Positions 2-52,151 of a stretch of 64,000 bases of DNA are shown here, one piece after another. A program made the translations under genes and the position numbers. The notes below the pieces were generated by a model. It had not been told where the DNA came from and ran no database searches. It was given only the letters and a program-made list of their open reading frames with translations. Where the stretch lies: NCBI GenBank assembly GCA_964234715.1, contig OZ174284.1; one strand, 5' to 3'. Every line of letters begins with the position of its first letter. Position 1 is the first letter of the stretch. Source of the stretch: Podarcis melisellensis (taxonomy: Eukaryota).

Positions 2-1702
2 CTCCCTGTCCCATATGGTATAATTGCGCTCCGCCTTGCTGAGCTTCCGGGAGTAGAACGCACCCGGTCGCCAGTTGCCTTGTGAATCCTCTTGCAAAAG
101 AACGGCCCCAACCGCTCTATCTGACGCATCGGTCTCTACCCGCATGGGTCTGCCGGGATTCACGTGGAGCAGCTGCTCTTCGGAGGCGAAAAGACCTTTA
201 AGCGTCCGGAAGGACCGCTCCGCTTGTTCGGTCCAGACGAACTTCTTCTTCTTGGAACTGAGGGTGTCAGTGATCGCCGCCGTCGCGTTCGCAAAACCTT
301 TAATAAACTTGCGGTAAAAATTGGCAAAGCCGATGAACCTCTGGACCTCTTTCCGATTTCGAGGGCTTTTCCAGTCCAACAGCGCTTGAACCTTAGCCCT
401 GTCCATGGCCAGTCCCTCGTCGGACAACTTGTAGCCAAGGAAATCAACCTCTCTGACATCAAACTGGCACTTTTCCAACTTGGCGTACAGCCTGTGTTCC
501 TTCAGCCTCTGCAGGACCTCCCTCACGTCCTTATCGTGATCCTCCGGCGATTCCGAGAAAATCAGGATATCGTCGAGAAAGCAGACACACTTCTTGTAGA
601 GGAGACCTGCTAGCACGTGGTGCATAAATGCTTGAAAAACGTGGCTGCCATTTTGGAGGCCGAAAGGCATGACTCTGTATTCGTATGTGCCCAGAGGGGT
701 GAACATGGCGGTCTTCCACTCATCCCCTTTCCGGATGCGGATGAGATTGTAAGCTCCACGTAGGTCCAGCTTGGTGAAAATCTTGCCCCTCCTGACGGTC
801 GCTAAAAGGTCGTCAATCTTGGGCATGGGGAAAGCTTTGGGCTTAGTCAAGCTGTTGATGAACCTGTAATCCACTATAAGCCTTTTTTGGGGCGTGTCCT
901 TCTTCTTCACAAAGAAAACAGGGCTGCCTCCCGCTGCTTTAGATTCCTGGATGAAACCTCGCTTGAGGTTATGGTCTATGAACTCCCGAAGCTCTTGCAT
1001 TTCGTCCTCCGACATGGAGTACAGCTTGGCAGCAGGCAATTGCGCCCCTGGCACTAAATCAATCGCGCAGTCGTAAGGTCTATGAGGCGGCAACTTGTCA
1101 GCTTCCTTCTCACAGAAAACCTCCAAGAATTCCTGGTACTTGTGAGGCACTGTTTGCACCATACCCAGATGCAATGGCTGCTCAGCTTCTCCTCCCTGAT
1201 CGGTCTGAAAGCAATGCTGAGCACAATACGATGAACAAAAGTTGATCTGCCTCTGGTACCACGCAACCGCGGGACTGTGCCTCTCCAGCCAACTCATGCC
1301 TAACACGATGGGTGTGTCCGATAAGTGGGTGACATTGAAACTAATAAGCTCTCGATGGTTGCCAATCTGCATCATCATGGGAGGGGTTTGCTGCACCACT
1401 TGCCCCCCCAGCAACTTCCTGCCGTCCACCGTGACCACGTTCAGAGGCGTCGTTGCAGGCAGGAGCGCCATGTTGTGCTGCTTAACGAACTGCAGTCCCA
1501 TGAAGTCGGCGTTGCTTCCCGAATCGATCGTTATTGGAACCTCGAGGAGTCTCCCATCAGGCAACTGGAGTGTAGCTGTGAGCAGAACTGCCGGTTTGGG
1601 AGGCAAAGGGTCCACGCTCTGCAGTGATGCTGGGGGCTTGTCTACAGATCCGCCTGGCTGAGCCCCAGTAGCTCTGCTTCCAGCCAGGCACTGTCGTTTC
1701 CC
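2..1702 (-). CDS. pol: Pol polyprotein (aspartic protease, reverse transcriptase, RNase H), -1 frame relative to gag, open to the window edge
   Basis: Manual translation: ...VPITIDSGSNADF...LPPHRPYDCAIDL...KLDLRGAYNLIRIRKGDEWKTAMFTPLGTYEYRVMPFGLQN...CFLDDILIFS...VETDASDRAVGAVLLQ...FYSRKLSKAERNYTIWDRE. Same frame from 1702 to 2; probably missing from the ORF track because it has no stop in the window. Confidence 0.95.
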
Positions 1703-2718
1703 TGAAGCTGCTCCCCTGGTTGCACCTCTGCTGTTACAGTTGCCAGCGCTGCAGTGTGCTTCTGGAGCCTCTGGGGGCACTCTTTCGCCATGTGGTGCGC
1801 ACTGTCACAGATGTAACACTTCCTGGTTCCTCTAGGAGGCTTCGCTTTGGCTGCACCAGGGACAGGGCTCTGGGATGGCTTCTGAGCCCTAGCACCACCA
1901 ATCTCCATTGGCTCCTCTCTGTCCTTCCCCATTGGCGAGGGGTGCGCACGGCTGAAGTCCCTGTGCACAAAAGGGAGAGTCCTTGCTTGCGCACGCGCTT
2001 GGGGCCCGTCCTCCTCGTGCCACGGACGCGCCTCATGTCGAATTCCAAGAGCTAAAGCCCGTTGCACCACGTCTTCTAGGGTCTGGGGTCTGTCCCCCCT
2101 AGCGATCTCATCCTTGATGGGGGGGCTCAATCCCTCCCAAAAAAGATCTCTGACCGGTTTACTGTCCTTTGGCCAATCTAAGGCGGTGAGCAATGCAAAA
2201 AATTTAGAGTGGTATTGGCGCACAGTCGCTTTCCCCTGCCTCAGCCCGTGCATTTGACGGCGCGCAATGTCCACATCCACAGAGGATTGAAAACAAGAAT
2301 CCATCGCTTTGATGAACGCAGTTGAATCGCGACGGGCCGGTCCATCTTCGCGCCACAAATTGCGTAGCCAAGCCCTGGCCTCCCCATGCAGGTGCGAAAC
2401 AATGAACCCCACTCTCTCCTCCTCATCTTTAAAATCGTGACGGAGTAAGTGCAGTGCATATACAACGTCCGCTCTGAAATTGGGATAGTCTTGCAAGTTG
2501 CCATTAAAATGCGGAACTAGGGCACCCCCCCTTCGTCCAAGCGCAATGCCCTCCGCTCTGGATCCTGGGGCCCCCGCCTTGTCCGCGCGCTCCCACCTTG
2601 CCTGCAAATCCTGGCACGTCTTCTCCAAGTCGTCATTCTTCTTCTGCGAAGCAATGACTGCCGATGTGAGAGCGGTAACCTGATTCCGCAATGCAACCAG
2701 CTGCTCCTCAGCGCTCAT
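1642..2718 (-). CDS. gag: Gag (N-terminal coiled coil, retrotransposon capsid domain, CX2CX4HX4C zinc knuckle), 358 aa from MSAEEQ
   Basis: ORF 1642..2823; the part above 2778 is LTR. First ATG after the LTR is at 2718 in GCCATG context. Motifs LRQGKATVRQYHSKF, EEPMEIG, CYICDSAHHMAKEC. Confidence 0.93.
   Translation of the reverse strand: MSAEEQLVALRNQVTALTSAVIASQKKNDDLEKTCQDLQARWERADKAGAPGSRAEGIALGRRGGALVPHFNGNLQDYPNFRADVVYALHLLRHDFKDEEERVGFIVSHLHGEARAWLRNLWREDGPARRDSTAFIKAMDSCFQSSVDVDIARRQMHGLRQGKATVRQYHSKFFALLTALDWPKDSKPVRDLFWEGLSPPIKDEIARGDRPQTLEDVVQRALALGIRHEARPWHEEDGPQARAQARTLPFVHRDFSRAHPSPMGKDREEPMEIGGARAQKPSQSPVPGAAKAKPPRGTRKCYICDSAHHMAKECPQRLQKHTAALATVTAEVQPGEQLQGNDSAWLEAELLGLSQADL
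1652..1702 (-). promoter_or_regulatory. -1 programmed ribosomal frameshift signal (G GGA AAC, 6-nt spacer, 9-bp stem-loop)
   Basis: Minus strand reads CAG GGA AAC GACAGT GCCTGGCTG (20 nt) CAGCCAGGC; heptamer 1702-1696, stem arms 1689-1681 and 1660-1652; the -1 shift enters pol. Confidence 0.85.
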
Positions 2719-2765: not shown

Positions 2766-2776
2766 AGAGGGGACTT
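2766..2776 (-). promoter_or_regulatory. Self-priming primer-binding site (non-tRNA)
   Basis: AAGTCCCCTCT lies 2 nt inside the LTR boundary and is exactly complementary to AGAGGGGACTT at 2930-2920 in the LTR; no TGG-type tRNA PBS. Confidence 0.8.
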
Positions 2777-2778
2777 AC

Positions 2779-3545
2779 TGTCACGGCCACCCAGGACTGG
2801 TCCCAGCTCACAAGAGACCTCACTCCGTTGCAGCTTATTTACAAGAAAAGTTTATTGAAGATTTCTGCTTCTCATACAGTTCAGCATTGTGGCCGTACGT
2901 CTGCCACGTTAGACCGCTGAAGTCCCCTCTGACTCCTCCCCTCTTCCGCACCAACTTAATAGCCTGGCTCTAGACCACCTCTTCCTCTCCTTTCTTTTCC
3001 GCAGGGTCTTCCTGCCCCCCTGGGTTCCCTCTCTCCGTGACTCGCCTGAGGCTGAATCCTCTGCCGCCTCTTCCCCCCTCTTTCTGGCTTTAGGGCCGGG
3101 CTCCTCCCCTGAGCTCTCTCCACTTCCGCGCGCCTCTACGTTTGAACTTGGCGCGCGTACGTTGCTGCTGACCTTTCCTTCGACCGCTACACCACCCCCT
3201 GCTCTGCTCTCCACCCTTTCCGGCTGAACACCCTGCTCCAACCCCCTCTCTCTGTTCTCTCCTAATCCTGCTCCCTCCGAGAGGCTGACGACTCCACCCC
3301 CTTTACTCCGTTCCGGCTGAGACGTCTCTTGCTTCCTCTGTCTTCCACTGGGCTCCTCTCCGCTTCTCCCTTCTCCTCCCCTTTGCTTGATTAAGGTAAC
3401 CCCCTTTTGAGAATCCTCTGACTCGCTGCTCAGACTCGTGGATTCCCTCAGAATTCCGTCATCTTCTTCCTCATCCTTCTGCCCCTCCTCCCACTCGCTC
3501 TCCGTCTCCTCTGTCATCTCCTCCTCTCTCCCAGAAACCCTGACA
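2779..3545 (-). repeat. 5' LTR (767 bp) with TATA-like TATTAA (2961-2956), predicted TSS ~2930 and AATAAA (2856-2851)
   Basis: Minus strand begins TGTCAGGG at 3545 and ends CCGTGACA at 2779; promoter and poly(A) motifs are in U3-R-U5 order. Confidence 0.88.
2909..3544 (-). CDS. LTR (U3)-encoded open frame: acidic/Ser/Gly-rich with basic C-terminus; coding status uncertain
   Basis: Part of ORF 2909..3658 inside the LTR: VRVSGREEEMTEETESEWEEG...TLRKRKERKRWSRARLLSWCGRGEESEGTSAV*, ~210 codons with no stop; in-frame ATG at 3517. Confidence 0.45.
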   Translation of the reverse strand, partial: VRVSGREEEMTEETESEWEEGQKDEEEDDGILRESTSLSSESEDSQKGVTLIKQRGGEGRSGEEPSGRQRKQETSQPERSKGGGVVSLSEGAGLGENRERGLEQGVQPERVESRAGGGVAVEGKVSSNVRAPSSNVEARGSGESSGEEPGPKARKRGEEAAEDSASGESRREGTQGGRKTLRKRKERKRWSRARLLSWCGRGEESEGTSAV

Positions 3546-4114
3546 CATACCTTTAGGCGCCAGGTGAAAATGTTTCTGTACATTTCGCCACAACATGCAA
3601 CAGAAATACAAACTTCTGTATTAAACCCACCCGTGAAATCCACGAAGACAACAAACATTATATTCAGAACCTTTAAAAGAGAGTGACATACTTCTAAATA
3701 TATCTTTATTCTTGTTAGTATGACACATTAGGTATCCTTTTACACTTCAGTTTTGCCAGATGTAATGAAGACCGTGGATCAAAAATAAGGTGTAGCTTCT
3801 GGTTTCCTGGTTCTTCTATTTTTGTTGGGATGAGGTTGCATGCATTACGTATGTGGAAATTTGAAGTGTAAATTTAACACTTTGCTGTCAGCATCAGGAA
3901 GGCATCATTCAGCCAACTGAAGCTGCATTTCCCTGCATTGACCTTCCCATGTATCTCATATGTGATCAGCAAATGATTTAGCTTACAGATGCTACTACCT
4001 GGGAAACATATCGACAAGCAACTTCTTTCTGGTTCGGAGGCTGTCCTGTATTGCATGTTTTGTTATTTTGCTAAAGGTTTAACTCAGTGCTGTTTCACTC
4101 AGGGCCTTCCTATA

Positions 4115-49921: not shown

Positions 49922-50811
49922 TATGTGGCGGTGGGTTTGTAGATGCTACAGCTGTGCCATGAAATGGTACAGCTACAATGTTTTTAAAAGCATATCTCAA
50001 TTTTTATTTTTATTTTTTAAAATAGAAATGTATCTCATTAACTATCAAAAATGGTTTATTACACTATGATGCACCACACTCAACAGTGATTTATTTTTTA
50101 AAAAGCAAATCACATATAAGCACAAATCATTAAGACTAAAGCAAAGCCAAACTGAGTCCAAAGCTTCATTTGCTTCTTGTTGCTGATGAGTGGGTGAGTG
50201 TAATATTAGTTCAGTGGGTTATTTAGCTTAAATTTAACTGACTGTTACTATTAGAATCTTCTAACAGAGTGAAGGGCAAAGATGGGAGTAACATGTGTTA
50301 ATGATATCCAATAGTGCAAACACCCATAATGAGGAACAAACTCATTAATAATGAGTTTTACAATACACAGAGAAAGAGAGAAAGAGAAGGCTAGAGCTAT
50401 AAACTGCTGTGAGACACAGGAATACAGAGAATTAGTGTGAAAAGGCAGCATTCACTTTCTGCAAATTTAAGAACAGGTAATGTGCAATCTGGATGAGGGG
50501 GAAAGGTAGCAATCTGCAACTGAAAAATCCAGTTATCTAGCTGGTCCTCCTTGTTTTACTTTTCATGTGGTAGAAGAACAGGCACATTATTGCAATAATG
50601 TCAAGATTAACTAAAGGATAAACACATCTTTACAAAGGACTTTCAAATCACTGATAATAGAGAACCTTGTAATTTTAGGGCTGACATGCAAAATAATGAT
50701 ATTGAGAAGAGGAAAAAGTGCCAAAGTTGGGATCTTGTTGTACAAGCAGACCTGTATGAATGCCATTCATTTCTGATCTGTAAAAACAAGAGTGATTAAA
50801 AGAATAGATTT

Positions 50812-51262
50812 TGTCAGGGAACTGCCATCAGAACAGGGGCAGGAAACAGAGGGGCAGTTGTGTTACAGGGAGCCTCAGAAAGTCTTGCGAAGCAGTTCTT
50901 CCTTCTGGTGAGGAGGAAAACACCACCTCCAGTGGGGAAGAGGTGAAAGGACCAGAGGATGCTGGTAGGAGCCTCAACACCGCTCATGGCAAAGTTGGCC
51001 AGGAGGGAAGCACGCCCCTTCCATCGCCCACCCTGCATAGAAGTCTAAAGCGCAAAGAGGGAAGGAAAAGGCTGGGCGTAATGAGACTTTTATGCTGGGA
51101 GAGGTCCCGGAAACAAGCACTCCCAGATTTTGCTAGCGATTGAGGCAGACATGAACTTTGGGGCTCTGCACTGTAAATAGTTTTGCACCTAAATAAAACC
51201 TGTAAAAGACAGGTCGGAGTCCTGCCTGGTGACTTGTGAGCAACCACCTTTGCCATCTGACA
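50812..51262 (+). mobile_element. Gypsy-type solo LTR (451 bp)
   Basis: TGTCAG...CTGACA termini, perfect 5-bp TSD GATTT (50807-50811 / 51263-51267), AATAAA near 51192. Confidence 0.88.
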
Positions 51263-52151
51263 GATTTCATTGCTTTCTGAATGTAGATTCACCCAAAAAT
51301 CCCAAGCACCAGACTATTTGAAATGGAGAAATCTGGAAAAATAGGTGATGTGCTTAAGCCAACTCAGACTCATTTCAGGATGTCAGAAACGATTGATCTT
51401 CGATCATTGGTGGGAACTCACCGGTCCATGGACCTCATTAGTCTTAGCAGTGGTTCTAATTTTACCCTGATGGGGCAGAGAGAGACACAGCTGCAGAGGA
51501 ATAATTGGGGAGTCAGAGTGCACCCCCAATTGTTCCTTGGCATGTGCCACTTGTATTCAGTGTCATTTCCTTATTTAGTATTACTTTTATATCCCAACTT
51601 TCCTCTCTCAAGGTGGCACCATGAGCTGTAACCAAGATATGGGGTGGGGGTGGGAGAGACTATGTGGGACTGAAGATTGCTCAGAGGCAGGTGATTTATG
51701 TTGGGACTTCAGCCAATGGAAAAGTGAGGCTTAAGACCCGCCAGACCCTAAAGGATGCTTAGATACCATATGACAGTCATACAAAGGGCAAGAAGGCATT
51801 AGTGTTTCTTTAGCACTTAGTAGGCTGAGATTTCTGCTTTTTGACCCAAGAATCTTGAGCTACACATGCCAACACACAGGGGAGATTATGAAAAACATAG
51901 ATGTTGTGCTTTTTAAAGTCAGGTAGAGAAGAAGAGGCAGCAATAAGTAAGTTATCACAAGGTGGTGGCCTTGGGGAAACTGTTTATTGGCCAAAAACAT
52001 ATGAGGCATTAGCTGAGCAGTAACCTTCCTGATGATGTTGAAACTTTGGCACATGGTCTGCACAGCAAGCTGTTTGCATTGCTTCTTGCATTTCCCCTCC
52101 TGTTCAAACCAGCCCTTTCTTGATTCTTCTCCACCTACTAGCCAGTCTGGT

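Follow-up and report, generated by a model that had tools for sequence, protein, structure and literature searches.

The long open frame over the U3 region of an LTR of a Ty3/Gypsy element in the lizard Podarcis melisellensis is most probably the 3'-terminal part of pol, which would be read through the polypurine tract (PPT) into the 3' LTR and end at a stop codon 20 nt inside R. As a C-terminal extension of Pol the frame is well supported, a judgement that is based on relatives of the element and not on the 3' end of this copy itself. The element would belong to a lacertid Gypsy lineage of the self-priming Tf1/sushi type, with a −1 frameshift between gag and pol and an integrase that carries an SH3-like and a degenerate chromo-like domain. 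With pol lacking a stop ahead of the PPT, translation of the genomic RNA would proceed through a long disordered integrase tail, after which the ribosome would cross the PPT (read as GGxGGFEGG) and enter the 3' LTR at base 2, between MD and VRGSG. Reading would then cover U3, pass the TATA box and terminate shortly after the start of R. Thus, a stretch of about 615 nt would act as promoter in the 5' LTR and would code for some 210–220 C-terminal Pol/integrase residues in the 3' LTR. From the comparison of related sequences we infer that the 3' LTR of the element described here is likewise entered in the base-2 frame, and that the U3-encoded tail is made as protein.

The window, i.e. the whole stretch of DNA that was analysed, comprises 64,000 nt of contig OZ174284.1 (assembly GCA_964234715.1) and contains no N. 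The element is located at its left edge and is apparently intact as far as it is covered (Table 1). Because gag and pol follow the LTR on the same strand, at lower window positions, this LTR is the 5' LTR, and the copy that would be translated is therefore the 3' LTR outside the window. The end of pol and the 3' LTR lie beyond the window edge, and the junction between pol and U3 was read in relatives. The interval 2909–3544 given in an initial annotation of this DNA correctly delimits the ORF and should not be taken for the LTR, which extends from 2779 to 3545. In Pfam, the gag product matches Ty3_capsid (1.8e-11) and Retrotrans_gag (1.8e-09), with zf-CCHC below the cut-off, and pol in the window matches protease, reverse transcriptase (RT) and the start of RNase H (RH), which together with the related model P0015 gives the domain order of Ty3/Gypsy elements. 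At the priming site, AGAGGGGACTT pairs with AAGTCCCCTCT, by which self-priming of the Tf1/sushi type is predicted. Further copies of this LTR family, or of the family of the solo LTR discussed below, were not found within the window by BLASTN or tblastn.

Table 1 Sequence features of the Ty3/Gypsy element and of the divergent solo LTR in the window
Feature	Position	Strand	Remarks
5' LTR, Ty3/Gypsy element	2779..3545	(-)	767 bp; TGTCAGGG at 3545 ... GTGACA at 2779
Stop-free frame	2912..3544	(-)	211 codons from LTR base 2; all of U3 and first 19 nt of R
TAA stop of U3 frame	2909..2911	(-)	20 nt inside R; aligned end in P0001, P0003, P0004, P0008, P0011, P0015
Acidic/serine block SSESEDSQKG	3401..3430	(-)	In 8/8 covering homologues; sole change final G to E in P0007
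Conserved block RAPSSNVEARG	3125..3157	(-)	Over GC-only inverted repeat
Basic cluster RKTLRKRKERKRW	2975..3013	(-)	NLS-like by composition
TATA-like CTATTAAG	2955..2962	(-)	Within RLLSW codons; 25–32 nt upstream of putative R start
Putative R start/self-primer AGAGGGGACTT	2920..2930	(-)	11 nt, LTR 616–626; complementary to PBS; under conserved C-terminal SEGTS
AATAAA	2851..2856	(-)	Within LTR
PBS-like AAGTCCCCTCT	2766..2776	(-)	Directly after LTR; 11-nt complement of R start (Tf1/sushi-type self-priming)
gag	1645..2718	(-)	358 aa, intact; Ty3 capsid, CCHC knuckle
pol	2..1798	(-)	-1 frame; protease, RT, RNase H start; 599 codons open to window edge
Solo LTR, divergent family	50812..51262	(+)	TGTCAGGG...CTGACA; TG...CA termini
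Solo-LTR base-3 frame	50814..51140	(+)	109 codons, whole U3, ends ...RKEGRKRLGVMRLLCWERSRKQALPDFASD; stop 51141–51143

The U3 frame begins with VRVSGREEE at position 3544, spans the TATA-like box as well and extends 13 codons beyond RLLSW. Over U3, the other two sense frames contain 5 and 8 stops, which is one stop per 25–40 codons. Among 5000 dinucleotide-preserving shuffles, only 0.64% had any frame that stayed open for 210 codons or more, and the initial description of the whole U3 as a single stop-free frame of about 210 codons is borne out. The two cautions that accompanied this description were equally justified, since the TATA-like box does sit inside the RLLSW codons, and since the purine-rich U3 is indeed poor in stops: the ORF region has only 11% T and the longest run in the shuffles has a mean length of 111 codons. 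The sequence of the window alone provides moderate support for a coding frame in U3. A codon-position composition bias was not detected in the U3 frame (chi-square p = 0.26) and its period-3 signal is 1.6, as compared to 8.1 for gag and 14.6 for pol, so coding is not backed by this measure. In the window LTR, the base-3 frame, which is used for entry by some of the relatives described below, reaches a stop after nine codons. By chance, the U3 frame remains open for 37 further codons upstream into the host flank (3546–3658, minus strand), up to an ATG at 3658, and a mechanical ORF list consequently gives an ORF of 249 aa that is partly host DNA.

Relatives in which the junction can be read were obtained from protein and contig collections. 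A word search with the tail yielded an ORF of Podarcis lilfordi (P0001) and one in a Logan contig (P0002), and a profile search of 1.84 billion representatives of any length added P0004 and P0003. Since P0001, P0002 and P0004 were found via the U3 ORF itself, they are selected for openness; P0003 was also first found via the U3 profile and not via the integrase side. Sampling by the integrase tail, which involves no selection on U3, gave P0007, P0008, P0009 and the other 11 members of the P0009 cluster (90% identity). The set that reaches the junction has ten members, nine Podarcis muralis models and one Logan contig, with P0003 and P0005 counted among them. The relation to the element in the window is close, as codons 143–599 of its pol are 88% identical over 457 aa to P. 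muralis P0009, the cluster representative of P0015, which makes P0009 a member of the window's own family or of a close sister.

The structure of the junction can be followed in P0003, a protein of 415 aa in which 196 residues of integrase tail are followed by the LTR start and then by the whole U3 frame. The N-terminal half corresponds to the C-terminal end of integrase models from P. muralis that contain H2C2, rve and SH3_Tf2-1 and then a chromo-like ILDSRWGEEG, and its last 218 residues match the window U3 in a single frame over the entire length with 63% identity (tblastn). Between these halves lies GGEGGRGGFEGG, as a purine tract translates, followed by M-D-VRGSGRE, which is the LTR start read from base 2. 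The combination of integrase, PPT-derived GGxGGFEGG, LTR start (M)DVRGSG and full U3 frame in one ORF is found in P0003, P0008, P0011 and P0015. The last of these is a single PR-RT-RH-IN model of 1405 aa with tail and U3 part, with Pfam domains in the order RT, RH, H2C2, rve and SH3_Tf2-1; its Chromo match at residues 995–1041 has E = 0.066 and 13.6 bits as compared to a cut-off of 25.1, and its look-alikes in the atlas score only 0.82–0.85. Single-frame tblastn alignments of the window U3 frame were obtained with P0003, P0002, P0004 and P0001. The N-terminus of P0001 aligns in the same frame with low identity, and a frameshift at this end is not indicated.

The initial annotation had suggested a C-terminal extension of Pol as one origin of the frame, and had proposed to look for a stop of pol ahead of the PPT. 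Such a stop occurs in none of the ten relatives that reach the junction, and four of them run through the full U3. Entry into the LTR is in the base-2 frame, which is that of the window ORF, in six of the ten: P0003, P0008, P0011 and P0015 continue for 218–220 codons to the end of the window ORF (SEGTSAV or similar), whereas the frame changes after about 150 LTR codons in P0007 and after about 20 in P0017. The remaining models (P0005, P0009, P0013, P0019) enter at base 3 and stop after 11–26 codons, and with four of ten thus being short-framed the long tail is missing from some copies. Short-frame models differ in the sequence immediately upstream of the LTR border, with at least two variants, which suggests, as far as can be judged from protein strings, that the variants arose by independent decay of copies. 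Within the P0009 cluster of 12 P. muralis models, long- and short-frame junctions number 3 and 3.

The observation that pol has no stop at the junction still allows that ribosomes enter U3 without consequence, the added residues being neutral and the frame being open due to the T-poor, purine-rich composition of U3 and to the shared ancestry of the copies. We consider this unlikely, even though a functionless run-on would agree with the absence of codon periodicity, the predicted disorder of the tail, the short tails of four of the ten models and the length that chance ORFs already reach in the shuffles. It would also agree with the rapid divergence of the U3 tail, which is much faster than that of pol (with the same family, the tail shares 63% and pol 88% identity). 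The tail lineages are the window element, P0015/P0011/P0003/P0001, P0008/P0004, P0002 and P0007, and the tails of the window, the P0015 group, P0008/P0004 and P0002 share 41–65% of their amino acids, with pairs that involve P0001 or P0007 slightly outside this range. The frame is open from end to end in every lineage but P0007. When substitution in the window ORF was simulated without constraint, with new bases drawn from a T-poor composition or from a transition/transversion model and with indels ignored, the frame survived in 0.4–0.8% of the trials at 61% amino-acid identity and in 0.1–0.2% at 45%. Run-on without function would thus leave the frame open in less than 1% of the trials per lineage (0.001–0.008), but four lineages remain open and end at an aligned position, the end being confirmed in three of them.

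The pattern of insertions, deletions and conserved blocks also argues against neutral run-on. A comparison of indel lengths across U3 frames, as proposed at the outset, reveals at least eight indel events between lineages, ranging from 1 to about 16 codons, and in the protein alignment every one of them comprises whole codons. It had further been envisaged that conservation might be limited to the TATA bases. This is not the case, because the acidic/serine block SSESEDSQKG, which is far from known cis elements and shows one change among eight homologues, is located some 500 nt upstream of the TATA box, so that conserved sequence extends beyond the promoter core. When the same lineages are compared, the part encoded by U3 is about as conserved as the tail preceding the PPT, which is certainly coding: the values for P0003 and P0008 are 54% and 57%, respectively, and for P0003 they are 77% in the U3 part (with P0015) and 72% in the pre-PPT tail (with P0009). 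The integrase core, with 83–94% identity, is far above both. Other conserved blocks lie over nucleotide elements, namely RLLSW over the TATA box, SEGTS over the self-primer and RAPSSNVEARG over a GC-only hairpin, and since blocks and cis elements coincide here, the conservation of amino acids may partly reflect selection at the nucleotide level. The hairpin consists of a GC-only inverted repeat, CGCGCGCC-N15-GGCGCGCG (3127–3157, minus strand), with an 8-bp stem and a 15-nt loop (−18.1 kcal/mol as RNA, z = −2.2). Its 3' arm is lost in the P0008/P0004 lineage, where RAPSSN is kept.

Dual use of U3 is well known from retroviruses. In the case of MMTV sag and HIV/SIV nef, U3 is promoter in the 5' LTR and coding in the 3' LTR, and the products come from separate accessory genes, each of which has its own start codon and is expressed from spliced mRNA. 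A similar arrangement for the lizard element, with a separate protein that starts at the ATG at 3517, was the second origin proposed in the initial annotation; initiation could also be at another Met close by in U3, on an own or a subgenomic/read-through transcript. A Met at codon 10 is common to the window, P0015, P0011 and P0017; all tails but that of P0003 have a Met in the first 28 aligned columns and none later, the only Met of P0003 being in column 37; and gene callers began P0002 and P0004 at such residues. The start is nevertheless poorly maintained, as P0003 has R and P0008 has A at codon 10, the Met is displaced in P0007 and P0002, and the proposed initiation codon is thus absent in P0003, P0008 and P0007, with positions that vary by lineage. 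Moreover, the open and conserved frame extends upstream past every Met as far as LTR base 2, and in six models it is continuous with integrase. Unlike sag and nef, the lizard frame continues pol and its internal ATG is not conserved, and an own conserved start that is independent of pol was not found. An independent accessory gene is unlikely on these grounds, and we assign it only a very small probability. The least probable explanation is an untranslated chance ORF, with database matches that only reflect the choice of open LTR copies by ORF callers. This bias does apply to P0001, P0002 and P0004, but models reached via the integrase tail show the same continuity. A stop between integrase and LTR is also absent from all models, so that at least the first U3 codons would be translated whenever pol is.

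If the frame is accepted as an extension of Pol, the properties of the tail deserve attention. An AlphaFold model based on a five-sequence alignment had a mean pLDDT of 49 over the tail and was without secondary structure, a relative of the U3-encoded tail was not found in Pfam or PDB, and a metagenome scan with the tail alignment gave no match. The U3-encoded tail is predicted to be a disordered extension with acidic/serine blocks and a terminal basic cluster. The tails preceding the PPT in P0003, P0005, P0007, P0008 and P0009 share a conserved STF[HQR]GF followed by acidic residues, and this integrase tail apparently continues into the U3 part. In P0008 from P. muralis, about 37 residues of the pre-PPT tail (DDRPEEQWRRKWLEG...DMDVFG) are duplicated exactly in tandem, which shows that the length of the disordered integrase tail can change freely by whole codons. 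Integrase C-termini that act in tethering are known from other elements, such as murine leukemia virus (MLV), where integrase binds BET proteins, Ty1 (integrase NLS and AC40) and Ty5 (integrase and Sir4). The lizard tail resembles the MLV, Ty1 and Ty5 tails in being a disordered integrase C-terminus with short motifs, a resemblance that concerns architecture only. A function of the lizard tail would probably lie in short motifs; judged by composition and by analogy with such integrase tails, the acidic/serine blocks and the terminal basic cluster may serve as short linear motifs for nuclear import of integrase or for its tethering to chromatin.

A precedent for the arrangement is known from plants. 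In the group A chromoviruses of the CRM clade (CRM/CRR, Beetle) and in Bingo of Beta vulgaris, the gag-pol ORF reaches into the 3' LTR, and the LTR encodes the putative targeting part of integrase, the CR motif (PMC3059260; PMC3605345). As in CRM group A, the lizard family has no stop between integrase and PPT (10/10 relatives), and the ORF continues inside the LTR and is conserved there, with 218–220 codons in four models and 41–65% identity between lineages. The differences are also considerable. CRM and Bingo are plant elements with a PBS primed by tRNA-Met, whereas the lizard element is an animal element with a self-priming PBS. Furthermore, the CR motif of CRM takes the place of the chromodomain and is LTR-encoded, whereas the chromo-like region of the lizard element lies upstream of the PPT, and the part encoded in its LTR, a disordered tail of about 210 residues, extends over all of U3, the TATA box and the R start, in contrast to the CR motif of CRM. 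The lizard family would thus be a functional analogue and not a member of the CRM group, likened to it by arrangement and not by sequence, and homology with the CR motif is unlikely. With the Tf1/sushi-ichi group it shares the self-priming complementarity between R start and PBS, the Tf2-1-type SH3 domain in integrase and a gag with a Ty3-type capsid. A description of a U3-encoded Pol tail in the Tf1/sushi group or in vertebrate Gypsy elements was not found in the open-access literature, and the family would be the equivalent of the plant CRM arrangement in a vertebrate. Provided that the tail is functional, promoter, priming and protein constraints would act together on about 615 nt of the LTR, and this family could serve as a natural vertebrate system in which to study dual-use sequence and how integrase targeting tails evolve. 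Practical implications are to be noted as well. In UniRef, the P. muralis models with the pol-U3 fusion bear an automatic name, and P. muralis loci of interest are those behind the entries A0A670JVM7, A0A670HKW3 and A0A670HMP7; pipelines for annotation in which pol is cut at the LTR border, or in which LTRs are masked before gene calling, would lose some 15% of the polyprotein; and dating based on LTRs presumes neutrality, which may fail in U3 here.

The solo LTR of the divergent family is of interest because the initial annotation had described it as unrelated in nucleotide sequence but as sharing a C-terminal motif with the U3 frame. BLASTN indeed detects no nucleotide similarity between the two LTRs, and in a global alignment they have the termini, AATAAA and CTTGTGAGC in common. 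Both strings that had been quoted from the solo LTR are present. The other two frames over the span of its base-3 frame contain 3 and 4 stops, and openness of the base-3 frame is therefore not significant in itself. Compared to the profile of the tail family, the solo-LTR frame scores 6.3 bits, a value attained by 1.9% of shuffles, and its local alignment with the tail scores 58, attained by 3.1% of shuffles; nucleotide identity is 39%, and the differences per codon position are 41, 44 and 57 in 77 codons, without a clear excess at third positions. Thus, the string that combines a basic cluster with RLLxW is real, but the similarity is marginal (p ~0.02–0.03), and an assignment of the likeness to descent at the protein level, to descent at the promoter level or to chance is not secure. 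A pol belonging to the solo-LTR family was not found. Base 3 is also the entry frame of the short-frame models (WMSG...), and the sequence of the solo-LTR family is compatible with read-through of pol there as well.

A more far-reaching scheme may be put forward as a speculation that is unlikely to hold in full. The tail would be a working integrase module, acting in nuclear import and/or as a chromatin tether and co-evolving with the promoter that it overlaps. Its presence would depend on the purine run at the border of PPT and LTR, where gain or loss of a single base would switch the tail on or off and yield long- and short-tailed integrases, and the solo-LTR family would do likewise in another entry frame, so that the arrangement would be general in squamate sushi-type elements. 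On either side of the solo LTR itself, GATTT is found as a perfect 5-bp target duplication (50807–50811 and 51263–51267).
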